DNA of 64,000 nt from Gracilinanus agilis (lineage: Eukaryota), in contig NC_058130.1 in assembly GCF_016433145.1 (NCBI RefSeq), positions 140,685,372 to 140,749,371 of the forward strand, written 5' to 3'. The notes under the pieces are model-generated. The model saw only the letters and a program-made list of their open reading frames with translations. It made no database searches and was not told the origin of the DNA. Below, one piece after another: positions 1-64,000 of the stretch. Each line of letters opens with the position of its first letter. Positions within the stretch are counted from its first letter, which is position 1. The position numbers were made by a program, and so were the translations under genes.

Positions 1-640
1 GGGGAGGGGAGGGGACGAGGGGGGTAAGGGTGGGACTAACGGGAGGGGAGGGGACGGAAGAGAAGGGGTGGGCCGGTGAAGAAGGACGCCGGAAGAACCA
101 GGAGCTGGGGGAGGGGGAGGGGCGGGGGGGAAAGGCTGCACTGTGAGCTGATTCTGCGCACGAGCACTAGGGGGCGGGGCTGGCTAGAGAGCGCACCAAG
201 AAAAGAGAGCGGGCTAGGCCCGAGGCAGCTGGGCTCGTCAGTGCGCACGAGGAGCGGTAGTCTTGGAACGAAGCATAGCTGCGGAAGAGTGGGGCTCAGG
301 ACTTCAGCTGAGCCCGCCAAGAAAGGAAGATGGGAAGATGAGACTACTGAAGAGACAGACGTATGCGTCTCGTGCGTGCGCTAGAGAAGGGGCGGGGACT
401 AGGCGGAACCGGAGGCGAAAGAGGTGGAGCTGGGGGAAAAAACAGGGGTGCGTGCCTGGAAGGAATAGGATTGGTCAACAAGGAGAGTGTCTGCGCGTGC
501 GCAGGCCGCCTTGCCAAAGGGAAGAGAATCCCGTTTCCCCAACCCCTTTCCCCACTCTGGCTCAGGGTGTTTTATTCCTCTAGGGGTCCAGAAGACTGTT
601 ACAGTTTTGGAGAAGCCCCCAGTACCCAGGAGGAGCCTGG
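1..640. promoter_or_regulatory. CpG-island promoter of the plus-strand HhH gene, probably bidirectional
   Basis: CpG-rich. Contains GC boxes (ggggcgggg near 172 and 389), ETS/GABP-like ccggaag (~90), NRF1-like tgcgcgtgcgca (~492-503), reverse CCAAT (attgg ~470) and G-tract runs at 1-130. Lies directly upstream of the ATG at 645. Confidence 0.75.
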
Positions 641-644
641 AGCC

Positions 645-2256
645 ATGGGCCCGGACGGGAGCCTCTATGACTGTGACAACCCCCAAATCTGGAAGGCCGT
701 GCTGGGCTGCTACAAAGAGGCGGTCAGAGCCAAAGAGGGCAAGTCCCGGAAACTTGTTGCTTTGGATGCATGGTGAGCCAGGCCAGCTGCCACCAGAGCC
801 TGCACCTCATTCTTAATTCCTCAAGGGTCCTGGACGAGGTGGGAGGCGAGGGGAGAGGGGAGGAGGCTGGGGCATTTCTCTGGCTCTGAAAGAAAAAGCA
901 GTCCTTACAAATACCCAAGTGTCAGTCCCTGCCCTCAACTCTACAATATTCTAGAAGAAACATACCCTGTGCTTAGCACAATGCTTGGTATATAGCAGGC
1001 TTTTGATAAATTGCCACTTTGGCTGACACATAGCTGGGAAAGGAAGTGATCCTGGGAGTCCCAGAGATATCAAGTGGAGCGGTGAGGCAATCCCAAAGCC
1101 AGATGTGGAAGGACATGTGGATAGGGTGTTAAGTGTGTTTGTTAGTAGTAGCAAGGCAAATGGCAGGATCCTGGGGAGGCCTTGTTATCCTGATAGGTAG
1201 CTGAAAATGATGTGCAGCGTAATCCGAGGCCAGCTATTCATAGTGGATCTGTTAAATTTGCTCTGGTCTACCAACCAGGACGACTCAGCCCCAGAATAGA
1301 GTTCCAAAGCAGAACAAATTTCCCCAAAGAGAGTGGGATAAGAGTGGAAAGAAGAGAAGGGGAGCAAGCTTCAGGGAAAGTGGCAAGATGTCCTCCCAAG
1401 CCTTGTCCCTGGTTTTTTGGTGGGCAGCTAGACGAGATTTGAGGTCTAGTTGCATCTCTTCACTTCTCCCTGAGAACCTGGACCCTAGGAGTATCCATTT
1501 CCAGTATTCAAAGAGGCCCTGGTATCTAGGGGATATATCCTAATCTCTAAAGGGTCCAAGACACAGGAACTCCATCTGTAATTGTATCTAGCATCTTGCT
1601 GTAAAGCAATTTAGTGCTGTACCCTGAGATCCAAGGGCTAGACTTTGGAAAGTGCTGTCCCAAAGGATCAGTGATCTTCACTGATCCCTCCCTATCACCA
1701 CTACACACACATATCCCTTGCTTTGTAAGTGGACACCTGTTTCAGGTATCAGGAGGAGCTGCCAGAATCTATAAGAGAGAGAAAAGAGAAATACTTAACT
1801 CGAGATGAATTGGTGAAGCTGATGGACTGGAAGCTGACGGTAAGCTCTTTCCCTATCTAATTGAGATTGCATCTGTGGAGATGGGCACAAATTCAGATAG
1901 AAAAGGTGCAGAAGAAACTCTTAGGGTCATTCAGACCAGTGACCTGATATGGTCCTCTCTACTATCCTATCATGGCCTTTCTCCAATTTCCAAAACTCTT
2001 CCTTCCCCCCAAATTAAATTACTTTATTTTATCTAGCTCTGCCTCTTTTGCTCCTTCTCTCTTTCCCTCTCTTCCCTCCCCCCTTTCCTTCTTCTCCCCT
2101 CCCCTCCCTCTCTATATATGAAAATGATGTGCAGCATAATCTGAGGCCAGCCAGTCATAATGGGTCAATTAATTTTGCACCAGCCTACCAACCAGGACAA
2201 CTCAACCCCAGAATGGAGTTCTAAAGCTGAATGAATTTCCCCAGAGAGTAGGGGTA

Positions 2257-2298
<42 letters not shown>

Positions 2299-4457
2299 AT
2301 ATTCTTGCATATACATAAATACACATGCACACAGTTACTTGTCTCCTTCAATGGAATTTAAACTCCTTGAATACTGTAACTGTTTCATTTGTACCCAAAG
2401 TGCCTAGGAAAGCAGGCACTTAATATTTGCTTGTTTATGTTCACTGATAGGTTACTGTATCAACTTTTCTCCCCTAGAAAGTTAGAAGTGGAATACTATT
2501 ATTTGAGAGATTTTAGAGATTATGGCCCAACCTCTTCATTTCATAGAGGCAGAAACAAACCCAGAAAGGGGAAATGGCATCCAAAGTTAGATTAGTGCCA
2601 GATTTACAATTGGTTTCAGGTCTTCCAATTTCCACCCTAGTGAAGTCAATCCCCAGGATTTGTTCCCAGCCAAGAGCTCCGTTTCATTCAATGACTTGGA
2701 GATTTTTAAAACCTATGTTTGTGTCCCTATGTTTCTAAGACTTTGGAGTTTGTTGTTTTTTTTTTAACCCTTACCTTCCATCTTAGAATCAATACTGAGT
2801 ATTGGTTCCAAGGCATAAGAGTGGCAAGTGCTAAGCATTTGGAGTTAAGTGACTTGCCCAGGGTCACAAAGGAAGTGTCCGTGGCCAGATTTGAACCTAG
2901 GACCTCCCACCTCTAGGGTTGGCTCTCCACCCATGGAGCTACTTAGCTGCCCCTGGATTTCTGTTTGAAGTTGGGAGTAAGGGTTGCATTCTGAAAACTG
3001 AGAAGTAGAGAGGTATTTCTACTGAAAAAAGACCTGGGTTTCTAAGGAAAAGAGATTAGAGCATGTAATTGGTCTAGAATGTGCAGTCAGAAGACCTGGT
3101 CATGAACCCCAATCTGACAGTTGTTAGCTGGGTGACGGCTCTTGGGATTTCTTGTTCTGACCATGTGCTCCTCCTTCTGCCCCTATCATCCCCCCACATA
3201 CTCAGAGGGGCCAGTTCAGACCACGACTGCAGAAGTTGGTGGCCACTAATCCGGAGGAGCTGGTAAAGCAGTGCACCGCTGCAGCGTTCTCTCTGCTGCC
3301 CAACGTGGAAGCTGCCATCACAGAGCTGAACCAGCTTAAGGCCGTGGGACCTGCCACTGCCTCTGGTGAGAGAGGAAGAGGAGGAGTAGAGCTGACAGTG
3401 TGATACTTTGTAACTTCCTCCTTAGAGCTGAGCCCTGGGGCTCCTGGGTTAAGGGAAGTCTTAGGGTGTCATATCTGACATCCTGGCATCTGCCTCTCCT
3501 GCTCAAGCCAGGAGGCTTCAGCTCAGTGGATACAAGTGGGACCTAAACTGACTGATACAGATCAAGCAAGGGCACTTGTCCCTCCTGCTCTCCCGGAGGC
3601 TGAGGAATGTCCCCTCCCTCTCCAGCTGCCTCAGGAGACCAGAATCTGACCATTTTAATCAGTTCAGTTTGGCATTTTTCTAACCTATGGCCAAATTCAA
3701 CCTGATGCTACTAAGAGACTTCTTCTGTTGGAGCAGATCCACCCAGCAGAAGAGATGACTTAGAGGTTATGGGGAACTTGCTTAAAATACTAGGGGATAT
3801 TCAGGCCCTAGGTTCCATGGAAGGGATGGATGAGCCTAGACTGGAGGATCCCTTGCTTTCTCTTTGCCCAATCATGATCATGTTTGTTCCCTTCCCTCAG
3901 CAATCCTGACAGCAGGTGCCCCAGAGACCACAGCATTCATGGCAGATGAGGCCATGGCTGCTGTCCCTGACCTCCCAGTGCTACAATACACTATCAAACA
4001 TTATATCCTCTACCTGGACAAGATCCGGGCCTGTGCTAGGAGACTGAACCAAGGTAAGAGCTAACTGCTGGAAGTATGTATATACCACAGTAGTCTAGGC
4101 CTGGGACAGGCTGACCAAATGTCTGCTCCCAGAAGGTTGGGGAATGACTAGGCCTAAATGTAGTGGGTTACGGAGTCTCAGGCCTTTGGGCTGGGAGACC
4201 CTCAGCAGAAATGCTTGGTTGGTTTAAATAGGCCCCAGAGTTGCACATTCATCTTCCCTTCTCCTTGGGCTTTTCTCATAGTTGATGCTTCATCAGAGTG
4301 GACTCCTCACCAAGTAGAGATGTGCCTCTGGACCTGGACTGTGGCCCAAAGACTGTGTCCCACAGTCCTGCCCCACATTTCTTGGAAAGCCCCCAAAGTC
4401 AGGGAAGGTGCTGAAGATGTCAGACCCTCCAAGAAACGAAAGGCTAGTATTCACTGA
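645..4457 (+). CDS. Uncharacterized 236-aa HhH-GPD DNA-glycosylase-fold-like protein (resembles my recollection of zebrafish zgc:112496)
   Basis: Exons 645-772, 1746-1839, 3206-3365, 3901-4053, 4282-4457. All introns are GT-AG, phases are consistent, total 711 nt, ATG in gccATGg Kozak context. Protein: MGPDGSLYDCDNPQIWKAVLGCYKEAVRAKEGKSRKLVALDAWYQEELPESIRERKEKYLTRDELVKLMDWKLTRGQFRPRLQKLVATNPEELVKQCTAAAFSLLPNVEAAITELNQLKAVGPATASAILTAGAPETTAFMADEAMAAVPDLPVLQYTIKHYILYLDKIRACARRLNQVDASSEWTPHQVEMCLWTWTVAQRLCPTVLPHISWKAPKVREGAEDVRPSKKRKASIH. The gene model is firm; the function is inferred. Confidence 0.88.
1203..2254 (+). repeat. Diverged ~135-bp direct repeat (1203-1337 and 2120-2254) flanking exon 2 of the HhH gene
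   Basis: The two copies align nearly gap-free, about 80-85% identical by eye. Confidence 0.85.
2260..2297. repeat. (TG)n microsatellite
   Basis: About 19 perfect units. Confidence 0.95.
2754..2953 (-). mobile_element. Marsupial tRNA/CORE SINE (SINE1_Mdo-like)
   Basis: Reverse complement of ggggcagct..gctcagtgg..gaggtcctaggttcaaat..gtgaccctgggcaagtcactt..aagggtt(A)n. Confidence 0.85.
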
Positions 4458-4569
4458 TCCTGGACATCTATATGCTGCACCCACAGAGAAATGCCTCAAG
4501 CCACAGTCTGAAGCCAGACATCCTCTACTCCTACCTATGGGGCTCAGGGCAGAGTTGCCACCGACACCC

Positions 4570-4575
4570 ATTAAA
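4570..4575 (+). terminator. Candidate poly(A) signal ATTAAA of the HhH gene
   Basis: ATTAAA about 113 nt after the stop codon. Confidence 0.4.
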
Positions 4576-4724
4576 GTGCCTACTGTCCTGACCTCATCTG
4601 ATTCTCTCCCAGGCAGGCATTGAGCTTGGAGTTAGAAAGATGGAATGTGTGGCTTCAATTCCACCACTAAATTCCCCTTGGGAAAGTCACTTGAATAATG
4701 TGTGGGGTTCTTTTTACACATACA

Positions 4725-6240: not shown

Positions 6241-9200
6241 CTAGGGGGGAGGCAGGACCTGTGCCCCCAGCAGGTCATAGGCGAAGATGTTCCAGAAGAT
6301 GGCAAAAAGGAGGAAGGTGGCATAGGAAAGCAGCACCACCCACCAGCCACACTGGTCCTGCAGGTTCTCTTCATAGCTTCGGAGGATGGTCAGACCCATG
6401 CTGATGCCCACGACGGCGCCCGCCAGATGGGCCATGAAGCTGGGCTGAGGGCCTGAGGCAGGCAGGGGCGGGGAGAAACGGAGCCAGACAGCTCGGCCCA
6501 CCTCTGAGCTCACTGTGTTGGGGGGGGGGAGCAAGATGTGAGGATGAAGGAACCCCTGGGGCAGCCCCCAGCCTGGCAGGGCCCGCTCACACCTCGGGAC
6601 ATGGTGGGTGCCCTCGGAGACTCCTAATGTGGTCATCTAGTGAGGAGTGATGCTCCAGGGGGCAGTGCCTGTCTGTGGCCAGACCTTCCTCCCTGCTAGT
6701 CATTCACTGTTCCTCCTTTATCTGCTGCAGTTGGGGGACAGAGGAACCCTATGGACCAGGCTCAGAACCTGTGAAGGGATGGGGGCTTCCTCAGGGCAGG
6801 GGAATGCTGTCCTGACCCCAGTTCAGCCCTCCCCACTCCCTTCCTCCTATCCACACCCCTGGGGCTGGCCAGTACTCACTGCACACCAGGGCCAGCACCA
6901 TCCTTAGCAGTTTGTATGGGCAGCGCATTCCGGCCCAGTTCTAAGAAGAAGGAGCATCTGGTCAGGGTTTGAACCCACTCTAATGACTCAGGCCATAGTG
7001 TCAGTGGGGATGCAGCTGGCCAGATTTTTCAAAACCCTCAGTGCCTCTTCCCCTCCAGCCCATGGCAGAACCTCTTCTTACCATAACAACATTGGCCAAG
7101 TGGGCAGAACAGAGGGCATAGACGCCGCCTGAGCCCCCTACCACAGGGGCCCGCATATCCGTGATGGAGACTGTCAGAGAGCCTGGGGGAGGAAGGGAAA
7201 GGAATGGGATGTCGAGCTGTCCCAGCAAGATGCCTCAGGAGAGAGTGGCTTCCCACTCCCCACCTCACCTGCCAGCACACCAGCCAAGTAGAGGAAGCCT
7301 ATCCGAAGCACCCCATGCACCATTTCCAGGGGCACGCCGATCATGAGCTGCAGGAGAGCATTGAAGCCCAGCTGTTCCAACCTGGACGGGGGAATAGGAC
7401 ACTGGTCAAAGCAACAGGACACTGACAGAGCATCTACCACAAAGTCCTGGAGCATAGGGAAGGCAGAACACCTCAATGATGTCACAGCATCACTACCGCC
7501 TTATTGAAAACCCACATCTGCCCAAAGCCCTGTACTCCAATGTGGGAGATCCCTTCCCTGCTCTCTAAAAGCAAAGGGAGGAAGGACTGCTCCAAAAGGG
7601 AATACTAGGTTCTAACTCCAGCTCTGCCAGGCACTAGTTTGAGGAATAGCCCTGGGGAGTCCCTTTTCCTCTTTTTCTGGGCCTCTGTCTCCAAGTGGCT
7701 GGGAAACAAGCTTCATCCCTACCTGGCCTGCTTTATGTGCTCTAGAAAAGGAGGTACGAACTTAAGAGACTATTTCCTCAGAGTCCCATAGCTCTTGGGG
7801 GAAACTTTGGACACGTTTCTTTCTGTCAAAAGCCCTTCCGTTTACCTGCATGAGATTGAAGCTGATCCCCTCTTACCCGACATGCATGAACATGTAAGTG
7901 AGAAATCGCCAGGCACGGGCACGGTGGCCAGGGTGGTACACCAGAGGACTCTTCATATACTCAGGGTGGTAGGTCTGCAACACCCACTTGTTCAGCCGAG
8001 CCCCATAACACAAGAACACAATGATCTGGGAAGGACACTTTATCTCAGTCTGAACCCCTGAGGCAGTAAACAAGGAAATCATTTTAGGGCTGAGAGTGGG
8101 GTGTCTGAGGCTACTACCTGTGTGAGTGTGACAGTAGCCATGAAGACAGGGGGTGGGCAGGTTCGGTGCTGGTAGAAGTACCATCGGCGGTCCATCTCAC
8201 AAGGAAGGATCTCATAAGCCACATAGCGCACAAAACGCTTGTAGAAACCAAGGCCTGGTTCATCTAGCAGCCCATCCCGGGGCAGGGCACGCTGCCCATT
8301 GGTGATGGCCCGCTTGAAGCTACTGGAGCGTTTGCTGCTGATCTACCAGGGAAAAACAGAAAAGGGCCCCTGATATCCAGCTTAGAAACCAGTGCCAGAA
8401 ACCTTGGGGACACAAGGACCACTTGAGAGAGGGAGTGAACTATTTTGGGGACCAAATTTCCAGGTAATTTGCCACCATTTTTGCTTTTCGTTCAAGATTA
8501 TGATTAATTGAATTATCTACCATGTACAGCACTTTTTTTTAAATCCATACCTTCTGCCTTAGAATCAATACTGTGTATCAGTTCTAACACAGAAGAGTGG
8601 GAGTTAAATGACTTGCCCAGGGTCACACAGCTGGGAAGTATCTTGAGGCCAAATTTGAACCCAGGACCTCCCATTTCTAGGCCTGGCTCTCAATCCACTG
8701 AGCTGCCCTCCCCCAACACTTTCCACCTTGGGCCCACATGCTTACTGTCAAAGACAATGAATAAACACTTGGACTTAAGCCCTCAAGGGAGATAAGGGAA
8801 ACCATCATCACCCAGCACTACTCCTAGACTCAGAGGAATGAAGGATTTAGATCTGGGAAGAATGATGGAGATTTTCTAGTCCAACCCATCCATCCTAAAG
8901 ATGAGGAGACCAGAGAAAATAAGTGACTGATCCCAACCACACAGTAAAAGTAGGATCTGAAATGATGGCCATTGACTCCAGAGCCAATATGCTTTCCAAA
9001 TCTTCTGCTGCCTGTTTCCTGTGCCAAAATTCCACCAATCATCTCTTTCAGACTGACCCTTGATGTGAATTATGCCCATTTTCCCCAGGTAGAGTGATAA
9101 CATGACTACAATAAGGTGGTCTCCCTAAATACCCCTCTACTAACACCCTAGAAGCAAGATCCAGGGGACCAATGGGAGCAGAGGTCACAGGCCTGAGGCC

Positions 9201-10910
9201 CCTGTCACTGACCAGGTCTACCAGCTCCTGGTAGCAGATCTGTCCTTGGTCATTGCTCTGGGCCAATGCCACCAGCATATCCAGTTTGGCAGGGTCCAGT
9301 GGCAGCTCATGGCTGTGCACCAGGCCAGTGAAGCTCTCGACACCAATGAAGCCAGTGTTGTCTGGGTCCAGCTGCTGTAGATAGAAAAGCCCAGGAAAGA
9401 GGAGGAAAGTTGAGGCCCAAAACAAGGAAGCTGGGGTCAAGACCAGCATTTTTCAGACCTACCCACCTTCATGTACACATCAAAGAAAGCTCTGGGATGG
9501 CAGGACTGAGATGAGATGGGATGGGGAGAAATCTATCTCAGACCCCGGACATCTTATTTTTCTGAATCTAGTAACCCATGAATAGTGAGAACTGATTTTC
9601 CATGCCAAGGGCAGAGGACCTCCTGACCCTCCTGGGGCCTGGCTTTCCTGGGCTTCTTCCTTTTCTCAAGTCTCAGGTGACCTCCACTTGTGTTCCCACT
9701 GGCAATTCAAAGGCCCTCATTCTCTGATCTTGCCCCAGGCATCGAAGGGAAGTGCCACAGGAACCTGTCCTATGCTGCCTTGTTTATTGTCTCTATTGGT
9801 CAGAGCAGGGAGAAGGAAGCCGCAGGTCCATGGGCCTCTTGTGCAGGCTAGTTGTTTTATGATTGCTAAGAAACAACTATGTTAAATTCCTGAATTGAAG
9901 GAGCCTGCAGCTCTACCCTTTCTTTTTAGGGAGGCGACTGTCTTCCCATTTCTGAATGTTCTCAAATTAGGAAGCTGCTAATACATTTGCTAGACAACTA
10001 TATCTGTTGCCCGACAATCCACTATTGTCAGGAACGCTTGCTGAGGTCTAACCTGTATCTTCATGCTATTTTAGGTCAGAAAACAGTTGGATACAACTTT
10101 CTGCCCCTATAAATCTTGTTTAGACTCACACTGATATTGAGTCCCCCACGTCTTCCATCCTAAGGCCAGACAATCCTTAGGGGGCAGAACAGCTAGACAG
10201 GTGATACAAGGTGGAAACAGAAAGCAGGGATGGAAGAGAAGGGCCCTTTGCTCCTGGCTCCCCAACCACACCATCACTGACTCTGGCTCTGACAGGCCAT
10301 CAGACCCGCAATCCAGCATTCCCTGGTCTGGGAGGGGAATTCCATCTTTCCCCTAATTCTCAGCCCCAGGGGTGTCCCCCGCCCCTGGCACGTCAGTGAG
10401 GGAGCTGAGCTCACAGGTCCGCGGGGGGCCTTGGAGGTCAGGGTGTCCTAGGGGTGGGGCAAGGGGGTGTCCTGTCGGAAAGGAGACAGGCACAGGGGTG
10501 TGGCAAACTGTGGCTCAGCCAGCCCGCCCCCCCCTACCCCGGCCGATCTGGTTCCCTGGGGAATCCCGCCCCAAGGAGGACTTGCACCCTGGTCTGGAGC
10601 GGACAGCGCACGGCTCCCGGAATCCCTGGGAAGGGAAGGAGAGCAGCCCTAACGGGGAGATGGCGAGACGCACCTTCAGGCGCCCGCCCAGCCGTTTGGT
10701 GCAATTCTCTGGTCCGCCAAGTTCTAGCCCCTGGCCGCAGCTGCAGGCAGTACATACGTCTTTCTGCATGCATGTGGAGGGTGCGGGGATGGGGGAGATG
10801 GGGAGTGCGATCTGTGCGGGAAGCCCAGCCCAGCCCAATCTGGCCCCGGCCAGCGCCCGCGCCCTCCGCACCTGCTCTTGGATGAGCTGCAGCAGGGAGC
10901 TCCTGTCCAT
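6241..10910 (-). CDS. RHBDL1: Rhomboid-related intramembrane serine protease 1, 373 aa
   Basis: Exons (5'->3') 10910-10872, 9374-9213, 8342-8118, 8025-7877, 7381-7269, 7182-7082, 6940-6880, 6512-6241; total 1122 nt, all GT-AG. Starts [17 protein letters not shown] and contains [10 protein letters not shown], catalytic GGSGG and AHLAG, ending [10 protein letters not shown]. Confidence 0.96.
8533..8710 (-). mobile_element. Marsupial SINE
   Basis: Same consensus. Confidence 0.85.
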
Positions 10911-11200
10911 AGAGCTGCCCGGGCGGGGGGGCGGCTGCTCCGCGGACCCGGCGCTGCAGCCCCGGCCCCGGCCCCAGGCCCAGCCCCAGCTCCGTTCTGC
11001 TCTTCGCTCCGGCCACCGCCACCGCCACCGCCGCACTCCCGCCCCGGCCCCCGCTAGTGCCGCCGCTGCCGCACACAGGGGCCAGCGCGTCACGGAGCCA
11101 CCACTCCCCTTCCCCCTCCCTCTCCTCTCCTGGACACACACACAGGCGCGCGCGCACACACGTACGTCCCACCCTTCCCTCCTCTCCCTTCACCGCTCAC
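10400..11200 (-). promoter_or_regulatory. CpG island over RHBDL1 exon 1 and promoter
   Basis: Very GC- and CpG-rich, with ccg/gcc repeats around the RHBDL1 ATG at 10910. Confidence 0.7.
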
Positions 11201-14200
11201 TCACAGAGCCACACAGCCTAGTCCTCTCCCGCTTTTCGACACACACAGATACACACAGACAGACTGACACACACACACCCCTCTATCCAAAGGTGCAAAC
11301 ACCCCAAGCTCCGCCCCTCTCCTGTCTTCCCTCCATATGCTCCTCCCTCAGACGCGACCCCCACTCCCCCACCCCCACACACACTGTGGAGAGATGGAGA
11401 CTCCCAAGTCCCTAGGATCTTACGCTGCAAAGGCCGTTACGGGACCAAGTTAGCCCTCTCCCTTCCCATCCAACCGAATTTACCGAGCACCTGCCATGTA
11501 AAGGGCATCGGGTTAAACCCAATAGGGGAAAACCGAGGGCCAGCCGCTGTTCCCTTCCCCAGGGGTGCCCCCATTAGAGCGGGCTTGGTCAGAGCCGTCT
11601 CTGGGGCTCCCATAGGGCTGGGGGCCCCATTTTCTGTCACAGCTCCATGGAGTTTCTCTCATTCATCACCCTGTTGTCACATGCCTACAACATCTCTCTT
11701 ATTGGTCTGAATAAAGTCTGTATTCCCCCACCCAACCCCAAATCTAGCTGGTACAAAGTCTGAGAGGAGGCTCTTAGTAAGACCATCTGGGGAATCAGCC
11801 CCAACAAGAGTGAGCGCAAGGGTGCCACGGTGCACACCGTCCCTACCTTCATGGAATTTCTGTTCTCCTGGAGAGGACACAACATGTCATCAGACAATCT
11901 GAGGAAGGAAAGAGCGTCAACAACTCAGTGGACCAGTGAAAACTATGGTAGAAATGACTTAAGATCTTTCTTAGAATGTAAAGAAAGGATAAAAAAAACA
12001 AAACAAAAAGCCTATAGCAACTATTCCCCAGATTGCACATTTGTGTATAGATAAATATCATCTGAGGAGCAACAGCCTGGAAAGATGGCCTGAAGGGAAC
12101 CCAGCTTTGAATGCTGTTTCTGACAGGACTCTGGGCTCACCTCTCACCTGTCAAATGGCCATAATGGCACCTAGTTATCTGTCTATTGTAACAAGGATCA
12201 AATGAGCTGATTATTTATGCAAAGGAGAGCACCCTCTTAAGGGCTATGTGTTAACTGGCATTCTATTTTATATAGAGATTTTTACCAGATTTACCGGAAA
12301 TTTTTATCTTTCAAAGATCTAAGTTCCGGGGCACAACCCATCTTCATTCCAACTAACATGGTAACCGCTTGGACAGTTACATATGTGTACCAAATTTCAT
12401 GTGCTTATAATCATAAAGTGTACTATAAAACCTCACATGAATAGACCCAACATTTATTCAGCATACATTTATTAAATATGCAATTTGTGCAAATCTTTTT
12501 GGGTGGAGGGAGGTGAAAAGGAGATGGCAACAGATCCCCTCACTGTCATCTGACATGTCCCTGAGGAAACAGTGCAGATGGGCATGCTCAGTGGGACAGG
12601 ATGGAGAGGGGCCTGGTGGCTGCCTAATTGCAGTACTGCCCTTTGTAACAAGCCAAGGAACAGACACATCCTTCTCCTCCACCCCGTCTACCTCCTGTAT
12701 TTATCACCAGAGCAACTGATTATTGAGCATCTGCTAGGTGCAGGGCTCGGTGCTTGGGAAGATTGGTTAGGGCCTACCTTGGAAAGCCTTATGATCAGTC
12801 TATTGGAGGAGATGGTAATCTATGCCTCCCTTCCCCAATCTATACTCTATTCATCCTTCAAAATAAAATTCCTACCAGAAAACCTTTCCCAACTATTCCT
12901 GCCCATAGTGGACTCCTTAATGACCTCCTGAAGCTCTTCTGATCAGTATGGTCCAGAATCAACATGCATTAGATCACTCTCCTCAAATAGGGACTGAGTC
13001 CCTCTGAGGGGTCTTACCTTTCTTCTGCCTCCTCCAGTGTCCTAAGCAAAGGTTTCTTGGAACATCTATGGCTAGTTTCTCATCCTGGGAATCTGCTCTG
13101 TGCAACAGGGTTCTTCTGCTTGGTCCCCCTTCCTCAGCCCAGAAAGCTTAAAAAAAAAAATCTACCCCTCTCCCCTTTCCCCAAAACACATACTCAAGCC
13201 ACATGCACATGTGTTCCATGTGAATCTCACAGATGGTGAAAAGGGGAAGGGAGGAGGGGGCTACTCCACAGGATACACGCCAGAAGTTTGCCAAAGAAAA
13301 CAACAGCAAATAGCGGATTTTTCAGTTTTGAAGCTGCAGCTGTCACCACCGAGGGGGACCTGCTCAGAAATAATGAGACACAAGCAATGACTGGTAAACC
13401 AAGTCTCCATGTCTGTCCCAGAATCCTGATTCTGACTCCAGGGGTGGTGGACAGTTTCATTTTTTAGGAGAAAGTGTGAAATTGGGTTCCTGGAACACAA
13501 TATAGCATTAATGAGGAAGCTGGACAAGCATCAGGTAGAAACTAAGCTGCCTGTGTAGCCCTACCTAACCTGGAAATGGGGTCTTTTTCTGATCAGTATG
13601 GGGGCAGCCTTCAAGGCATTCCTTTGCCCACCAAGCCCAGATTATGTCCCCTAGAGAGCACAGCTCTTGAATTCCTACACCAGGAAGAGGACCGGGATGG
13701 GAGAGGCCACCCTTGTCTCTTGGGGAGGGGGGGCAGGGCACAGTGGCCAGAAATAGACTTGTCCTTTGAGGATCCAGTCCCAAACTCACATGCTAACCCA
13801 CCAGAATCTGTGCAACTGAGAGGATACCAGGGGAGAGAAATCTGGCCCCAGTGGACTTGGCCTTATGACTGTTGTGACAGAGGCTGTTGGGTTACCATAG
13901 CAACCCCCTCAGAGGGCCATTCGGAAATCCATAACCTCCTGTCGGGGAGCTGAAAAGGAGCAATTACTCCTGGCAGTTAATGCCCCTAGAGGATGCTGGA
14001 AGGTTAGAAATAGCAAGCTGGTCTGTTCAGAAATAGGCCTAAGGAACGAGGTTGCTCAGAGCTCAGAGCAGGAGCATTAAGCTGAGTGGTTTTTCTCCCC
14101 AAACCTCCCTGGTAGGACACAAGGGGGTGGGGGGTGAGGGGGAAACAGCAGAGAGGCTGAAACAGTTTGCCAGATCTGGGCCACACTGAGAGATGTTCCT

Positions 14201-17488: not shown

Positions 17489-32963
<15,475 letters not shown>

Positions 32964-33289
32964 GGTCCCAGCCGAGACTGCGGCTGCCTCTCTGCCGGCC
33001 GCTGGCTCCCCTCAGCCCGTACTTCCGGCTTAAGCTTCTGCTCGGCCCGCCGAGAGGCACCAGAGAGCGTCGGGGAGTCGGAGGCCTAGAGCGGCGCGAG
33101 ACAGCCGCCGTACGATTGCTGTGCGCCCCCTGTGCTCTGCAGCGGGCACTGCACCCAGCCCTCCAGCGCTGGCCTTCCCGGAGGATAACGTACCTACCAG
33201 GCCGCCCCCAATCCCACTGTGTTCTCCTCTCCACGCGGTCGCCGTGAATGTCCAAGTAGGCCTCAGAAATGAAGCGGGTGGGAACTGAT

Positions 33290-34131
33290 TTTATTGAAAA
33301 AGCATCTTTTAAATGGCCAAAAAACAGAGAACGCAGGACTTTTCCGTTAGGACAGCGGGATGACACTAGCTAGCTGCTTGGCCATGGGGATTGGCTGCTG
33401 TTGATTCACTTTCAGCCCTGTTCTAGGCTGTGATCCCATTTGGGTTTTCTTGGCAAACATTCTGGAGTAGTTTGCCATGTCTTTCTCCTGCTCATTTTAC
33501 AGATGAGGAAACAGGCAAACCCGCTAAGTGACTTGTCCAGGGTCAGCAGCTAGTGTCTGAGGCCAGATTGGAGGAAGATGAGTCTTCCTGACTCCAGACC
33601 TGGCATTCTCTCCATTGTGCCACCTAGCTGCCATGGGGAAGATCATTTCAAATCAAAAGACATGCCCCTGCTAGGTGACTGCCTGGGACTTTACCCAGAA
33701 ACCTGACAGGCACATGGAGGGAGCTACATGGGGATTGCTGGGGATAGCAGGCTTGACAATGGACCAGCACACCTTCCTAGTAGGGAGCACCTAACTTCTC
33801 AGCCTTGTGATTTCATATGTAAGTCAGGGAACATGGAAGGGAGAGGAGAAAGGGAGCAAGAAGCTGAGGTTCTGAGTAATTAGGGAGAGGTCCTCACTAT
33901 AACCACTGGCTCCTCCTAGTTAGCCCTGGATCTTATCCCAGAGGGTTGGAGTAAAAACATTTACTCCTCCTCCTTAGAATGGGTCAGGTGAGCAAGTGCT
34001 AAGGCCCTAATCTCCAGGAAGAGAAAGAACAGTCTGGACCTGAGAAAAGAACACAGTCGCCTAAATTCTCCAGCAAGGTGCTGACTCAACAACTGAGGCT
34101 TACAGCCAGACTGCAAACATCCGATTTTATT
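33290..34131 (-). terminator. Candidate WDR90 poly(A) signals (AATAAA at 34126-34131 and 33290-33295)
   Basis: Two minus-strand AATAAA hexamers between the WDR90 stop and the RHOT2 promoter. Confidence 0.4.
33395..33632 (-). mobile_element. MAR1-like CORE-SINE (RTE-type tail)
   Basis: CORE motif ttttacagatgaggaaac..aagtgacttg.ccagggtca plus gggttttcttggcaaa..ctggagtagtttgccat tail. Confidence 0.65.
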
Positions 34132-43800: not shown

Positions 43801-46800
43801 AAATAACTCCTATTTACCTAGTGCAGCAATGGAGAACCTATGACATGGGTGCCAAAGATGGTACACAAAGTGCTCTCTGTGGGCACTGGATCTCCCTCCC
43901 CATCCCTCAGGCAAAGCTGCTCCCCTCCCCCTCTCCCTCATGCCAGATGGCATTTTTCCCATCCCCCGCCCCAGCAGTCCAATGGAAGCACACAGGGGAT
44001 AAGGTGGGCAGCTCACAGGTGGCAGAGCTGGAAAGCTCAGGCCACTCCCCTCCCTCTCTCTACACTGGCTGAGGACATTCCTCACTTCACCCAACCGACC
44101 AATGGGAGCACTTCCTAAACTGTGTGGGATGGGGGGGAGGGGCATGGCAGGCAGTCTGAGGAATGGGGTGGGGACAGGGTCCAGCACTCTGTCTCTAAAA
44201 GGTTCACCATCACTGACCTAGTGTTCTATAGCTTACATAATACCACCAAGTGAGGCAGAAGGGGCATGTACTGGACCTTCCCTCTGACAAAAGAAGAAAG
44301 TGAGGCTGAGGCAGGCTGTGTGACTTGCCCAAGACTATCCAGATAATAGGTGATAAGAACAGAGATGAAGCCAAGATCACCTGGCTGTGATTCCAGGGCC
44401 GCTTTGACTCTGCCATATTTACACACACTTGGAGAGGTGAGCTCTGCATCAGCAGCCCCAGAGCCCTTCCCCACCCCCATCACAACCACTAGGGACAACA
44501 GGGAAAGCTGCCACTCAGTTCTGGCAGCCTGAGGGCTCTCATGAGCTTGCTGCCACCTGGGGTTGGACAGAAGTCCCACAGAAATCATGGGTTTCCAGTC
44601 TCTGATTCCCAAAGAAAACATGGGTGGCAACCCTTGCCTTTATCCCCCAAAGCTGGACCTCACCATCCACAGAGAAGGAGATGGCCGTCACTGGTACAGG
44701 GTGAGGGTGTATCTTCAGCTCCATCTCTGTCTGGGAAATGCTGAATACACGGATCGTGCCATCACTGTAGCCAGCCACCACTCGCTGGTGGTCAGTTCTG
44801 CCACTACTGGATGATGGATTCCAGGCCAGACACAAGCAACTCTAAGAGAAAGGGAAAGACATGGACAAGCTGCCCTGAGCTATCACTTCCCTCACTATGC
44901 AAACTCTGCTTCTGTTAATGCAGTCTAAGCTGCAGAGCTAGCTCTTCTGACCACCACATCACACTGTTTCACCTCACTTCTACAAAGAAGGCAAGGGGTT
45001 ATAATTTGCCAAACATGAAGAGATTCTCTGGTCTCTTTGCCATGTAAACTACTTTCTAGTAATCTTTCCCATTTTTACCTGTAGAGATAATCTTTCAGAA
45101 GTATATACACTTATAGTTACTCCTGTTAAATTTCATCGTTAGCTTCAACCCACCACTCCTCCCCCTATTTCAATCCCTTTAGGGAATCAATCTACTTGGG
45201 CTCCTGAAGAACAGAGAGATGAAGGGCCTCAGCTCCCCTTTCCCTTAAAAGGGCAGATGTGGGGCACAGAAAAAGCTCAGGAAGCACAATCCAGCCCAGG
45301 GCTCTAGTACCCTGGGATGAGGGATAGCCCCCAATAACCTTACTGACCCCTCAGACCCAAGGAGAAGAATGTTCCATGTGACTGGACATCACTTGGCTCT
45401 GTCCTCAGAATACCTGATTTAGCACCTGGAACTGCACCACCAGCTCCATGCTGGTCAAGGACCAGACCCGCACACTGCCATCCTCACCACAAGTGGCACA
45501 GTGGGACTCCTTGGGACTAAAGGTCACTTCATTCACCTGCAAGAGAAGGGAAGATAAATGCTAGCCTGGCTTAAGTGAGTCCTTTCTTTCACCCACCAGA
45601 GGGAAATTCAGGGCTACCACCAAAGATGAGATTGTTGTCATTCCAACAGGTAACTCATTATTCCTTGCTGTATTCCCTCCCTACCCACCATGCCCCATAC
45701 CTTTTAACAGCTTTGAGGCTAGTCAATCAATCACATTGAGGACACTATATCAGTAACCAAAGTGATAATAGCATTTTAATAGACACAGTACAAATACAGA
45801 TAAAATATAGCCTTTGATGATGAATGAGATATTTTTAAAGCATCCGAAGCTCCTCAAAGAAGTAAAGATGGATAAATTGCCCCAATCTGGCAACTTTCCC
45901 TTTGGAAAGCTTTTTTCCTGCAGTTCCAAAATGATGTAAAACCCCAATTTCCCAAGTTTCATGTCCCCTACATTTGAACAAAACATGATCAGACAGCATC
46001 CCAATACAGAATAAATCTATATGTAATCAGGTTGTGGGAAAGGCCATCTCATGCACTCTTGGCTGATCTGACATTAGCCATACACTAGTTTCTCTGCTGA
46101 CATGACCCATTAAGCCTACACAAGCACTCCCAGAGTACTGAGGTCTGACTGCTTCTGACTATTTACCTTGTTTTTGTGGCCACTGATCAGGCGGATATTG
46201 GTTTTCTCAGCCCAGTTGATATACCACAGGGTGCCTGCAGTTGTGCCCACAATGCCCATATCCATGCTATCATCAAAGCTGGCACTGACCACAGCACCAT
46301 CCAGAACCATCTCTTGCTCCATAAAGACAGAGCTGGACCTGAGGAACAACAAGAAGACTGGAAATTTGAAATTAGCAGGGGAAAAAAAAGGAATTGGGTA
46401 TGATAATGGGAAAAATGAAAGCAAGTAGTCTGAAGAGACTAAAGGAAATTATATTGGATATACTTCATACAGAGGTCGGATCAGTCAATGTCTCACTCAA
46501 AAAGTTTTAGTACGAAGCTCAATTTTCCTAACCTGGCATTCAAGGACCATATCCCTCCCCATTCCCACCCACTATGGACACTTCCCCTCTATTACTTAAT
46601 GCTTTGGCTACACTAGTTACTGACTACCTCCCTGCACATCCATCTTCCATGTACTCCAACTTGTGCCTTTGCTCCTGGTCCCTTTTAGGCCAGAATGTCC
46701 ACCCTTCCTATCTCTGCCTGCCAACATGCTAGTTCTCTCATTTGTCAGGAGCTGGCAGTGCTGCAGTATCCAAAGGAGTACTTTGTGCAGAGGAAGTATA

Positions 46801-49800
46801 GTTATTCTATACTCAAATCTTCACAAGCCTCTTAGGTCAGCATGTACCACATGGGTGGTATTTGGTCACTTTTTAGGTTGAGAGGCTAGCCAGGAAATGG
46901 AAGGATCATAAGAGTGTTTTGAGTCTAGGGAGCCTGGAGAGAGGAAGAGAATTACCAAGTGTTTAGAGAGTAGTACAGGAGTGATCAATGATGAGAGGAA
47001 ACAGTAAGAGACTAGAGAGTTGATTCAGGTCAGTGCTTAAAGGGCAGAGGCTCTGCCTTACCATATTTTTGTGTGTGTAATGAACTCCTTTGTCTTCTGG
47101 TGAAGCCTAAAGACCCTCTCTCAGAATCATGTGCATAAAATTAAATACTGAGGATTAGAAATATTATTAAAACAAGTTAACAGACCCTGGATCAAGAACC
47201 TCCGCTACAGGAACCACACACAAAGGGCCAAAAAACTATGCACACCCTTTGCCCCAGCAATATCACTACTGGTCTATATCTCAAAGAGATCAGAAGTAGG
47301 AAAAAGGACCTACCTATACCAAAATGTTTTCAGCAGCTCTTTTTGTAGTGGCAAAGAATTGGAAACTGAGGAGTTGTTTATCACTTGGGAAGTGGATGAA
47401 CAAGTTGTAGTATATGGTTGTAATGGAATACTATTGTGCCATAGGAAATGATGAACAGGAGTTCAGAAAAACCTAGAAAGACTTATATGAACTGATGTAA
47501 AGTGAAGTGAGCTGAACCAGGAGAGCAATGAATATGGTAACAGAAATATCATATGATGATCAACTGTGAAAAACCAAACCATTATCAGCAATGCAAGTTC
47601 TCAAAATATCCACAAGGGACCCAAGATGAAAAATGCTATCCATAGCCAAAGAAGGAACTATTGGAGTCTGATTACAGATCAAAGCATTCCATCTTCCACT
47701 TTATTTCCTTCATGAGTTTTTATTGTACATGTGATACATCTCTTCTATTAGGACATAAACAATATGAAATATATATTGCTAAAAGCACTGTAATAACCTG
47801 TGTCAGACTATTAACTACCTCAAAGAGGAAGGAAAGAGAGGGAGAGAGAAAATCTGAATCTTAAAACATCAGAAAACAATTCTCAAAAAATTGTTTCTAC
47901 ATGTAATTGAAAAAAAAAAAGTTAAAAAAAAAAAAAAGAACCTCTGCTACAGAAGAATGAATGGGTCCATGGTAATTCCAGCCAATGTATGAAGGAGAGT
48001 TAGAGGTGGCAGATATGAGTTGGAGAAAGAGGATATGAAGGTGTAGTAAGGCCAGCAGATGGGCCTTTAATAAGTTGTATCCTAGGGCTTTCCAGCCCAA
48101 TGCAGTCTCAAAGTAGATACCCTCCTCTAAATACCCTATATATCCTAGGGATGGGAAGTCCTGGGTTCAAATCTGTCCCCTGACACTTTCTAGCTGTGTG
48201 ACCCTGGGCAAGTCACTTAATCCCCATTGCCTAGCTCTTACCAGTCTTCTGCTTTGGAACCAATTCTAAGATGGCAGTGCAATATTGAGAAGCTATCAAA
48301 TCAGACAGTGGTTCAGTGGGTGGAGTACCAGGTCAGGAGTTGAGGTCAGATCTGACCTCAGACACTTACTAGCTATGTGACCCTGGATAAGTCATTTAAC
48401 TACTGCTTGCCTCAAGTTTCCTCAACTGTAAAATGAGGATAACAGCACCTTCCTCACAGGATTGTCATGAAGATCAAATGAGAAAATGTTTGTGAAGTAC
48501 TCAATATAGCACTTGGCACATATTAAGAGCCTTATCAATGTTCGCTATTATTATGATGATAATCTCATGCAATGTATGTTAATCGTGATATTACAAGATC
48601 TATTTTGGGAAGAGATTGACCATGTCAGGGGAGAGATACAGCACAGGAGTACGAGGTTCTTATGACAGTGAGAAGATACATTAAAGGATCAGCTGAAAAA
48701 CCACCTCTCCTCCATGAAGCTTTCCCTGATAACCTTGCTACAAAATAACCTCTCCTACAGCTGATATCTAAGCACTTTAGATTCTGTTTATGTAGTTACA
48801 ATATTCTAATTTGGTTTACTTTTATCTCTTTAGATATCTACTCACCATTACTAAAGTGTAAAATTCTCTAGGGCAGGAAGCATGCTTATTTATCTTTGTA
48901 TCTTCCAGCATCTAGCACAGCAAATTAAACAAAGTAGATGCTTACAAAATGTCTATGAAAGGAATTCTATTCCAAAGTATGGAACATAATGCAGAGAAGA
49001 GGACTAAGGCAGTTCCCTTAGCCAGCTAACCAGGCTTTAGTGATTGCCCTGGCTATGGCCACTTTGTGTACATGGATTTGTAGGGTTTCCAGGAAGTGGA
49101 GTTTGCTAGAACTGATGCAAAGCAGCTGCCTTTCAAAATACACTTGAATTTATGAGTGGGGGGGTCTTCTCCTAGGACAGTGATGACAAACCTTTTAAAG
49201 ACCACGTGCTGTGCCACCCCACCACCACCTTACCCCAGCCAGGGGAGGTTGAAAGGGAGAGGAGTGGCCTCAGCACCCTGCAGAGAGGCCTCTGCATGCC
49301 ATCTTGGCCCTAGGAAGTTCTATTGAAAAGGCTATCCTGAAGACTCTTTTAATTCCTAAATCCATAATTTATAGGTATACCTGCTGTACCTATTTTTGCT
49401 GCCTATAGAATGTAAGCTCCTAGAGGGAAAGCACTGTTTCATTTTTTTCTTGTATCCCTAGCGGAGTGCCTAGCACATAGTAGATACTTCAGTAAAGACT
49501 TGTAGATTGATCTGCTCTTCCAGAAGCAGAAATCAAAAGGATGAATATTCCCCAAAGCACCATCATTTTCTTTAAATCTACAATCACCAGAGTTAAAACA
49601 AAGAAACAGTCCTATACTCTTCATTGTTCTATTCTCTACTCTTCCCTCTTACCCTCTCAAAAAAATGATATGCTTTTCCTTAATTTGAATCCTATCACTA
49701 TAGTCCAATGGACTGCCTGGTCCCCTGGTTCCCACTCCCAAATATATCCTTCTATTTGCCAGGTCCCTATCAAAGGCTTGGATACAGAGGCTCCTTCCAC

Positions 49801-63177: not shown

Positions 63178-63219
63178 CTGAAAAGGTAATGAAAGAAAGG
63201 ATGTCATTACAAAGTAACT

Positions 63220-64000
63220 CAATGGACGAGCTAACATAATAACAATGACCATTCTACCCAAATTAATTCACCTATTTAGTGACATACCTATCAAACTACC
63301 AAAAAACTTTTTTACTGAATTAGAAAAAACTATAACAAAGTTCATTTGGAATAACAAAAGATCAAGAATATCAAGGGAAATAATGAAAAAAAAAAATGTG
63401 AAGGAAGGTAGCCTAGCAGTGCCAGATATTAAACTATACTCTAAAGCAGCGGTCATTAAAACGATATGGTACTGGCTAAGAGACAGAAGGGAGGATCAGT
63501 GGAATAGACTTGGGGTAAATGACCCCAGCAAGACAGTATATAATAAACCCAAAGAGCCCAACTTTGGGGACAAAAATCCACTATTTGACAAAAACTGTTG
63601 GGAAATTTGGAAAACAATATGGGAGAGACTAGGTTTAGATCAACATCTCACACCCTACACCAAGATAAATTCAGAATGGGTGAATGACTTGAATATAAAG
63701 AGGGAAACTATAAATCAGGGGCCAGCAACTATGGCTCTCGAGCCATATCTGGCTCCACCTCTGGACCAGCCAGTCAGGGCAGAGCCCCAGGATGTGCCCC
63801 AGGGGGCCCTTCAGCCCCCGCCCCAAATTCCAGCGCCTTCTGCCTCCATCCTCCTCCTTCCTCAGGCGTTTATGGCTCTCACGGCCAAAAAGGTTGCCAA
63901 CTGTTGCTATAAATAAGTTAAGTGAACACAGAATAGTATACCTGTCAGATCTCTGGGAAAGGAAAGATTTTAAAACCAAGTAAGAGTTAGAGAAAATTAC
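63220..64000 (+). mobile_element. 5'-truncated marsupial L1, ORF2 C-terminal region; continues off the window
   Basis: Translation MTILPKLIHLFSDIPIKLPKNFFTELEKTITKFIWNNKRSRI..LAVPDIKLYSKAAVIKTIWYW..FDKNCWEIW..LTPYTKINSEW is typical of L1 ORF2. Confidence 0.95.
63716..63906. mobile_element. Non-autonomous hAT MITE, family B, nested in L1 ORF2
   Basis: TIRs caggggccagcaac and gttgccaactgttg; perfect 8-bp TSD ctataaat; L1 ORF2 resumes on the other side. Confidence 0.9.

Follow-up and report, generated by a model that had tools for sequence, protein, structure and literature searches.

A five-exon opossum gene encodes an Amun orthologue with a predicted Ogg2-like HhH-GPD domain and a basic tail, a putative nuclear monofunctional glycosylase

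Introduction

Does the gene lying between STUB1 and RHBDL1 in the opossum Gracilinanus agilis encode a DNA glycosylase devoid of lyase activity, a protein that only binds DNA, or an enzyme with another substrate? The question arises from a stretch of 64,000 nucleotides of the genome of this species (the window), in which a sequence-only reading had assigned positions 3330-4457 to a nuclear lyase-less glycosylase or DNA-binding protein of the HhH-GPD type. Here, we examine the structure of the gene, the family to which its product belongs, the predicted fold and the residues of the putative active site.

Results

The flagged stretch corresponds to the 3' two-thirds of the G. agilis gene LOC123230937. 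As the extent of the feature, 3330-4457 does reach the stop codon, but it covers the gene only from late exon 3 onward, the start lying at 645. Predicted five-exon GT-AG splicing on the + strand yields an open reading frame of 711 nt coding for 236 amino acids, with the following elements:

645-772, + strand: exon 1, which opens with the ATG (645-647), holds codons 1-42 and two bases of the next codon, and ends at a GT donor; N-terminal helices
1746-1839, + strand: exon 2, 94 nt with AG/GT boundaries; YQEELP...LMDWKLT, including Trp71-Lys72
3206-3365, + strand: exon 3, 160 nt; RGQFRPRL, HhH helix 1, the hairpin LKAVG and the start of helix 2 (GPATAS)
3901-4053, + strand: exon 4, 153 nt; remainder of HhH helix 2, the Gly/Pro loop (G133 and P135), FMADE and the invariant Tyr157
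4282-4457, + strand: exon 5, 176 nt with the stop TGA at 4455-4457; final core helix WTPHQVEMCLW and tail 208-236
4570-4575, + strand: ATTAAA, a candidate polyadenylation signal found by pattern search, the sole such hexamer between the stop codon and the 3' end of the RHBDL1-like gene

The spliced protein is 100% identical to a part (P0152:29-264) of the RefSeq 'uncharacterized protein LOC123230937' of G. agilis, and exon 1 likewise counts 128 nt in opossum and koala. An ATG further upstream, at 339, is an alternative candidate start. LOC123230937 is oriented head-to-head with STUB1 and tail-to-tail with RHBDL1, in an order (STUB1, the gene, Rhomboid) that is common to opossum and koala; exons similar to RHBDL1, RHOT2 and WDR90 are found downstream, inside the window. 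The RHBDL1-like gene is convergent with the glycosylase-like gene. Judged from its sequence, LOC123230937 is an intact, already annotated, five-exon opossum gene.

Sequence similarities identify its product as the marsupial orthologue of Drosophila Amun (CG2446), zebrafish zgc:112496 and opossum 'STUB1-DT'. A tick Amun is 47% identical over 211 aa (E 6e-61), the fish zgc:112496 proteins share 50-59% identity with the Gracilinanus protein, and exon 3 alone matches 176 library proteins at E<=1e-3; the same family holds many insect proteins named 'Amun'. The link to D. melanogaster Amun itself is made through NCBI/UniRef names and the tick and insect proteins, since the fly sequence lies outside the listed matches. 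Family members share with the Gracilinanus protein the elements WKLxRGKFRPRL, LK[AG]VGPATASA, FM[AS]DE and YT together with a basic tail. Arthropod Amun proteins exceed the 236-aa marsupial form in length (about 300-510 aa), their tails being extended. Bacterial relatives count ~196-200 aa and end without the C-terminal tail. Their gene neighbourhoods differ, two Gemmatimonadaceae loci having a ChaN-type haem-binding protein and one Chloroflexota locus a divergent MgsA/RarA; not being conserved, they give no functional hint. Drosophila Amun was reportedly described by Shalaby et al. (2009, Genetics 182:1061) as nuclear and as carrying a putative DNA glycosylase domain. As that proposal made the same inference as the one examined here, the opossum protein is a member of an already known, though little-studied, family.

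The names STUB1-DT and LINC02867 borne by the opossum orthologue raise the question of whether the open reading frame is what remains of a gene in decay, no longer functional in Gracilinanus, as the lncRNA name of the human locus suggests. The loss, in some eutherian models, of the putative catalytic Asp described below goes in the same direction. Against this, the reading frame is intact, the splice sites are canonical, exon sizes are identical across three marsupials, and seven other marsupials have 236-aa orthologues that are 79-93% identical. Moreover, dN/dS among marsupials ranges from 0.15 to 0.33 with an excess of third-position changes, a pattern indicating that the gene is under purifying selection. 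On the basis of dN/dS and gene structure, we rejected the pseudogene explanation, to which we attach next to no probability.

An AlphaFold (AF2) model of the exact protein (pLDDT 90.3) displays a two-domain helical HhH-GPD fold, in agreement with what had been proposed from the sequence. The core domain (residues 1-207) is compact and the model contains no beta-sheet domain. The best structural matches found with VIA-align are the Ogg2 enzymes MjaOgg (3knt, Z 10.5), TmOgg (3n0u, Z 10.4) and SsoOgg (3fhg, Z 9.2), aligned over 161-167 residues with 12-16% identity. The resemblance to Ogg2 is that of a compact two-lobe HhH-GPD protein of ~200 aa lacking the A-domain of OGG1, and the aligned part represents 161-167 of the 205-209 residues of 3knt and 3n0u. 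When 48,161 chains were searched without bias, the top 21 all belong to the HhH-GPD superfamily (Z from 10.4 down to 5.4) and other folds first appear at Z 4.7; a Foldseek-seeded list comprises 156 chains with Z>=5. A model of the fish orthologue gave the same structural result, Foldseek alone reaching only E 0.12. Because a Z of about 10 is under the level deemed safe for all-helical proteins in the note accompanying the alignment tool, the fold assignment relies on a uniform hit list combined with the HhH motif.

Pfam HhH-GPD (PF00730) matches neither the Gracilinanus protein at E<=10 nor 28 relatives at E<=1, and Pfam OGG (PF21790) gives over residues 65-194 a sub-threshold score of 17 bits for a cut-off of 27. 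A profile search of PDB sequences returned only local HhH matches (ComEA, MutYX), searches of Pfam and PDB sequences with single exons returned nothing useful, and a word search with exon 3 yielded no candidate within its length range. HhH-GPD membership is structural, carried by the predicted model and not by a curated sequence model.

Monofunctional HhH-GPD glycosylases are also structural matches of the model (Z 6.2-7.3), with no significant sequence-profile match past the HhH. Compared with MutY, the Gracilinanus protein has neither the Fe-S cluster nor the MutY C-terminal domain and, compared with AlkA, it is devoid of the N-terminal sheet domain. The absence of a 4Fe-4S motif, already noted from the sequence, was confirmed by a regular-expression search of the 236 aa for C-x6-C-x2-C-x5-C; the six cysteines (10, 22, 97, 172, 193 and 204) are scattered and not conserved.

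The same hit list contains enzymes that do not excise damaged DNA bases: the queuosine-salvage glycosidase QNG1 (DUF2419; 7u07, Z 6.1; 7ugk, Z 5.9) and the phage 5-PmdU glycinyltransferase PUGT (8z2m, Z 5.5). Both share the HhH-GPD-type fold, and QNG1 exemplifies its use on nucleotides. Damaged DNA might similarly not be the substrate of the Amun family, whose members could be N-glycosidases of nucleotides, nucleosides or RNA, comparable to QNG1, or base modifiers like the phage enzyme; the determinants by which Ogg2 recognizes its lesion are missing from the family, and no repair phenotype is known. However, DNA glycosylases score higher (Z 10.4-10.5), QNG1 is much larger (322-339 aa) and a weaker match in spite of belonging to the same superfamily fold, and Amun-family proteins retain a textbook HhH hairpin of the canonical DNA-binding type, the eukaryotic members having in addition a nuclear-type basic tail. 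We consider a substrate of this kind to be quite unlikely.

The hairpin itself, LKAVGPATASAIL, occupies residues 118-130 and straddles the junction of exons 3 and 4 (codons 3335-3365 and 3901-3908):

3335-3365, + strand: first part of the HhH motif, L118-KAVGPATAS plus the first base of the A128 codon, with Ala124 at the position of Lys120 of Endo III

Both the position of this segment and its nature as an HhH hairpin could be verified. Pfam HHH matches 20 of 28 relatives (best E 4.8e-6); for the Gracilinanus protein the match (E 0.0093) falls below the cut-off, and exon 3 alone gives E 0.055. A family profile aligned by hhalign to residues 109-128 of E. coli Endo III is confident over the 20 HhH columns only, the registers obtained outside the HhH with relaxed local and global modes being unreliable. 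In the AF2 model, the HhH helices span residues 108-115 and 123-133, and G122 of the hairpin LK[AG]VGPATAS is invariant.

Within these confident columns, hhalign places Ala124 (codon 3353-3355) opposite the catalytic Lys120 of E. coli Endo III, as the sequence-only reading had it, and this Ala is invariant in every relative seen, including the bacterial ones. Ogg2 enzymes have a catalytic Lys in HhH helix 2 as part of an Asp-Lys dyad, which in the Amun family is replaced by the invariant Ala; the monofunctional MutY, AlkA, MagIII and Mag1 likewise have a residue other than Lys at the Endo III K120 position and an Asp ~18-20 residues further on. Could a bifunctional glycosylase/lyase have recruited its lysine from elsewhere? 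Two candidates are conserved. Trp71-Lys72 is invariant in alignment A2 and in all 26 bacterial relatives, and Lys72 is found in 183 of 191 sequences of a wide alignment, three of the remaining ones having gaps; position 119 is K or R in all relatives, bacterial ones included. Yet the nucleophile of all characterised HhH-GPD lyases stands at the HhH helix-2 position (general mechanism, PMC3397491), which is here an Ala, and makes a displaced lysine very improbable.

The second element of the putative active site is an Asp in exon 4:

3945-3950, + strand: the two codons for Asp143, the putative catalytic residue, and for the invariant Glu144 next to it, where the predicted helix 143-147 begins

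FMAD corresponds to residues 140-143 and the codon of Asp143 to 3945-3947; in the spliced protein, Asp143 does lie 19 residues past Ala124, a spacing that is 18 in bacterial relatives. Of 191 relatives, 184 have an Asp at this position, the only exceptions being elephant (His) and reindeer (Glu), and 189 have a Glu at position 144. The conservation on which the proposed role of Asp143 depended is therefore observed, the Asp-Glu pair being kept in distant bacterial relatives. In the AF2 model, Asp143 begins helix 143-147 after the Gly/Pro loop formed by G133 and P135, and an Asp following such a loop is common to Ogg2 and the Gracilinanus protein. At the sequence level, hhalign gave no correspondence between Asp143 and Asp138 of Endo III, its confidence being limited to the HhH. 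Asp143 is a putative equivalent of the HhH-GPD catalytic Asp by its spacing and helix N-cap position only.

A retained Asp also bears on the possibility that the protein is a non-catalytic binder of DNA, or of abasic or distorted sites, and serves as a chromatin or transcription cofactor, in the manner of S. pombe Mag2. The matches include Mag1 and Mag2 structures (3s6i, Z 7.3; 4b22, Z 7.0) and the lyase Lys is absent from the family. The fly orthologue is known solely for modifying Notch signalling and sensory-organ development, and it was reportedly recovered with DNA-protein complexes. Nevertheless, Mag2-type binders have lost the Asp, whereas Asp143-Glu144 is retained from bacteria to vertebrates. 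As the bacterial relatives have no tail at all, an enzyme is favoured over a eukaryotic transcription cofactor, and we regard a purely non-catalytic role as unlikely.

The C-terminal tail follows the core:

4422-4442, + strand: RPSKKRK, a monopartite NLS-like basic cluster (residues 226-232) in the disordered tail

The protein had been described as ending in RPSKKRK. The cluster is indeed present, but not at the very end: since the sequence terminates in RPSKKRKASIH, it is four residues short of the C-terminus. The model predicts disorder for the tail (residues 208-236, pLDDT 51-58), and the pattern K[KR]x[KR] occurs in 184 of 196 eukaryotic tails (94%) compared with 19% of shuffled tails. These features suggest that the protein is probably nuclear.

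Discussion

The initial proposal of a nuclear lyase-less glycosylase or DNA binder finds support in silico in the predicted fold, Asp143, Ala124 and the basic tail. That the Gracilinanus protein, as an Amun orthologue with an Ogg2-like HhH-GPD domain and a basic tail, is a putative nuclear monofunctional glycosylase is a reading for which we see about even chances. In such an enzyme, the KKRK cluster of the tail would direct nuclear import, and the hairpin LKAVG with the helix GPATASAIL would grip the DNA backbone, the base flipping into the cleft that separates the two helical lobes. Asp143, with the aid of Glu144 at the helix N-cap past the Gly/Pro loop, may then hydrolyse the N-glycosidic bond. 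Since Ala124 occupies the position of the Schiff-base lysine, no AP-lyase step would follow.

The resemblance to Ogg2 probably does not extend to substrate recognition. In Ogg2, a strictly conserved Lys as the last residue reads the N7-H of 8-oxoG and accounts for the discrimination between 8-oxoG and G (PMC3397491). This C-terminal Lys is absent here, the Gracilinanus core running on into a 29-residue disordered tail that ends in ...KASIH. The literature that we searched contained no relevant work on STUB1-DT, LINC02867, zgc 112496 or Amun with base excision repair, and no enzymatic activity reported for any Amun-family member. To our knowledge, the amun phenotypes are only developmental (Notch modifier, bristles), none being in repair. 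We tentatively consider a more specific scenario, possible though doubtful, in which the Amun family would form a separate and ancient Ogg2-like branch with members in Gemmatimonadota-type bacteria, fungi, plants and animals. Its lysine-less Asp-Glu site would excise a nuclear DNA base, possibly a regulatory one, and the gene would be lost or decaying in several placental lineages, including one whose locus is called a lncRNA. Under this scenario, a base that is regulatory rather than damaged would explain the developmental phenotypes of the fly.

To conclude, the gene is already annotated, the reading as a nuclear putative glycosylase pre-exists for fly Amun, and no new kind of system is described. 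This work adds a high-confidence model that sets the Amun family beside the Ogg2 enzymes, the conservation from bacteria to vertebrates of the Asp-Glu pair and of the Ala at the lyase position, and the observation that the family lacks the determinants by which Ogg2 reads 8-oxoG. Were a substrate to be found, animals would be credited with a further base-excision (or base-editing) activity, perhaps overlooked because the human locus carries the name of a non-coding RNA.

A constrained five-exon gene and its orthologues

The window consists of vertebrate-type DNA that is CpG-poor outside islands and contains SINE-like elements, and it holds no long prokaryotic-style ORFs. Five exons, read from positions 1-4700 and spliced by script, sum to 711 nt, i.e. 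236 codons plus TGA:

645-772, plus strand: exon 1, canonical border
1746-1839, plus strand: exon 2, canonical AG/GT borders
3206-3365, plus strand: exon 3, canonical AG/GT borders
3901-4053, plus strand: exon 4, canonical AG/GT borders
4282-4457, plus strand: exon 5, canonical border, ending in TGA

The span 3330-4457 singled out by the sequence-only reading does contain the elements described there, but covers only the part from the end of exon 3 to the stop. A script comparison found 100% identity between the window protein and parts of two RefSeq models, residues 29-264 in XP_044513065 and residues 50-285 in XP_044513064. Cluster look-up lists both for Gracilinanus agilis as 'uncharacterized protein LOC123230937', and the gene thus has an annotation already. 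Both models carry an added N-terminal extension from an upstream ATG at 339, the start of RefSeq isoforms X1 (285 aa) and X2 (264 aa), which splice into sequence immediately 5' of the conserved ATG at 645. Since the orthologues of opossum (93% identical), koala (90%) and most other marsupials are 236 aa long and begin at the downstream Met (the same start as the window protein in the first two), this extension (339-647) is probably a 5'-UTR artefact.

Introns 1 and 2 share a repeat of ~135 bp, probably a dispersed marsupial element, at 1201-1335 and 2118-2255; the two copies are oriented alike and both start with 'gaaaatgatgtgcagc'. A (GT)n microsatellite follows the second copy at 2262-2300, and 2839-2877 in intron 2 is SINE-like. 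At 63218-63913 (plus strand), a LINE-1 ORF2-like open frame of 232 codons (…KLPKNFFTELEKTITKFIWNNK…) is a retrotransposon fragment.

In opossum and koala, a divergent TPR/U-box gene (STUB1/CHIP) flanks the gene on one side and a convergent Rhomboid gene on the other. Downstream in the window, the exons found are on the opposite strand:

6244-11000, minus strand: RHBDL1-like exons (rhomboid, EF-hand)
19000-33000, minus strand: RHOT2-like exons (Miro GTPase)
44500-57900, minus strand: WDR90-like exons (WD repeat)

Their order agrees with a STUB1-RHBDL1-RHOT2-WDR90 block, and CpG-rich islands occur near 10000-11500 and 32000-33400. Exon sizes (128/94/160/153/176) are the same across three marsupials, among which pairwise dN/dS (NG86) is 0.15-0.33 and differences are in excess at third positions; judged from sequence, these features together mark a constrained coding gene in marsupials. 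The same dN/dS values and identical exon sizes make a decaying ORF scarcely credible.

Pfam and PDB searches with single exons were uninformative and a length-restricted word search with exon 3 gave no match, so an exhaustive search was run with exon 3 alone, which returned 176 matches at E<=1e-3. Orthologues returned by a full-length word search come from monotremes, reptiles, amphibians, sharks and bony fish (zgc:112496); bats and horses have them too, one of their UniRef entries being named 'HhH-GPD domain-containing protein'. The family is labelled 'CG2446' on a snake transcript and 'Amun' or 'protein amun' in ticks and many insects (tick Amun: 47% identity over 211 residues, E 6e-61); further members occur in corals, crinoids, molluscs, annelids, fungi and a liverwort.

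The opossum orthologue is named 'uncharacterized protein STUB1-DT' at NCBI and 'Long intergenic non-protein coding RNA 2867' (LINC02867) in UniProt. Among placentals, the putative catalytic Asp is replaced by His in elephant models (P0112, P0161-P0164) and by Glu in reindeer (P0048, P0158), and an orangutan model of 435 aa (P0056), named 'translation initiation factor IF-2-like', holds an exon-3-like segment. Taken together, the Asp changes, the orangutan model and these names suggest lineage-specific gene decay in placentals. Bats and horses (P0213, P0214, P0229, P0238, P0248) keep the Asp, as FMSDE.

Predicted fold

No Pfam or NCBIfam family reached its cut-off: on the exact window protein, PF21790 ('OGG-like') matched residues 65-194 at 17 bits (cut-off 27), and the HHH model scored 16.2 bits (cut-off 24). 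HHH was matched by 20 of 28 relatives (best E 4.8e-6), and PF00730 (HhH-GPD) by neither these 28 nor the window protein. An AlphaFold2 model was built from A2, a family alignment of 67 sequences with the exact window protein first (pLDDT 90.3, pTM 0.85); a fish orthologue was modelled with equal confidence. The core (1-207) is predicted to be all-helical and the tail (208-236) disordered, with HhH helices at 108-115 and 123-133 and a short helix beginning exactly at Asp143.

Foldseek alone placed nearly only HhH-GPD glycosylases at the top, yet at E>=0.12. With VIA-align against 48,161 representative chains, where Z below ~13 can be generic among helical proteins, T. maritima Ogg (3n0u) came first (Z 10.4, 167 residues, rmsd 4.2). 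The next 20 (Z 7.3-5.4) all belong to the HhH-GPD superfamily (Mag1, Endo III, MutY, OGG1, MagIII, NTHL1, AlkA, MutYX, QNG1/DUF2419, MUTYH, AGOG, MIG and phage PUGT), so that the fold foreseen by the sequence-only reading fills ranks 1-21. Unrelated folds appeared only from Z 4.7 down, a pattern repeated in a second search. Re-alignment of the Foldseek list gave 156 chains at Z>=5, including M. jannaschii Ogg (3knt, Z 10.5) and S. solfataricus Ogg (3fhg, Z 9.2). Because the match list is uniform, covers the whole domain and is joined by an independent sequence motif, an HhH-GPD fold is supported for the modelled protein. An enzyme acting on a non-DNA or non-damage substrate, likened to QNG1 or phage PUGT, seems quite unlikely.

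Putative active-site motif

The hairpin LKAVGPATASAIL is present at residues 118-130, split by intron 3. In a comparison of the family profile with E. coli Endo III, hhalign pairs residues 113-132 with Endo III 109-128, the alignment past the HhH being unreliable, and places Ala124 on the lyase residue Lys120. FMAD stands at 140-143, Asp143 being codon 3945-3947, and the Ala124-Asp143 spacing is 19 residues against 18 for Endo III K120-D138. The six Cys are scattered and the Fe-S loop motif is absent. Each of these elements stands at the residue number given by the sequence-only reading. A lyase using a Lys other than the HhH-position one appears very unlikely.

An alignment of 191 sequences was limited to proteins carrying G[PA]AT[AS], which makes its hairpin columns partly circular. 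At position 143 it has Asp in 184 sequences, His in five elephant sequences and Glu in two from reindeer; Glu144 is kept in 189/191 and Tyr157 in 190/191, and W71, K72, R75, G76, R79, P80 and L82 are near-invariant. A2, not motif-filtered beyond the original exon-3 matches, has W71, K72, G76, R79, P80, L82, L118, G122-A126 and D143 invariant.

When bacterial and archaeal genomes were scanned, 26 clear relatives turned up (L004-L029; 34-41% identity over residues ~3-196) from Gemmatimonadota, Chloroflexota, Rhodothermales and Steroidobacteraceae MAGs, two complete chromosomes included. Examples are:

L008, 2998-3588: bacterial relative
L005, 2962-3564: bacterial relative
L014: bacterial relative
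L024: bacterial relative

Clearly delimited ORFs are ~196-200 aa long, end 7-15 residues past the core and lack the basic tail. They retain WKMxRGVWR, LKGVGPATAS and the Asp-Glu pair, as 'FFDE' where the window protein has 'FMADE', and their loop is one residue shorter, giving the Endo III spacing of 18. A C-terminal GGK motif is conserved, and neighbouring genes are not. Outside these relatives the family is eukaryotic. The match in L030 (OZ219972.1, 'Stappiaceae MAG chromosome 21'), 52% identical, stretches over 1039 bases with intron-like interruptions, so that this entry is probably a eukaryotic sequence assigned to a bacterial MAG.

In these alignments, the Asp (with Glu) and the Ala extend through the whole family, which would suit a lyase-less catalytic centre more than an inactive binding module; a non-catalytic DNA binder or cofactor is accordingly considered unlikely. 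Ogg2 combines a catalytic Lys with a strictly conserved last-residue Lys reading N7-H of 8-oxoG (PMC3397491), whereas the window protein has neither determinant.

Basic tail and proposed function

The nuclear-signal-like RPSKKRK is found at 226-232, although it is not the very C-terminus as had been stated, ASIH coming after it. Among eukaryotic members, 184 of 196 carry K[KR]x[KR] in the tail, versus 19% of shuffled tails; Lys plus Arg account for a fraction of 0.23 of tail and 0.13 of core residues. Fly Amun is described, with reference to the 2009 work by Shalaby and colleagues, as a nuclear regulator that carries a glycosylase domain. The literature searched reports no biochemical activity for any family member.

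The fold, the family-wide Asp/Glu and Ala and the basic tail lend computational support to the earlier view of a nuclear, lyase-less glycosylase or DNA binder. Our best reading, to which we give about an even chance, is a putative nuclear, monofunctional, Ogg2-like HhH-GPD enzyme of unassigned substrate. The same hypothesis is already attached to the family from fly genetics.
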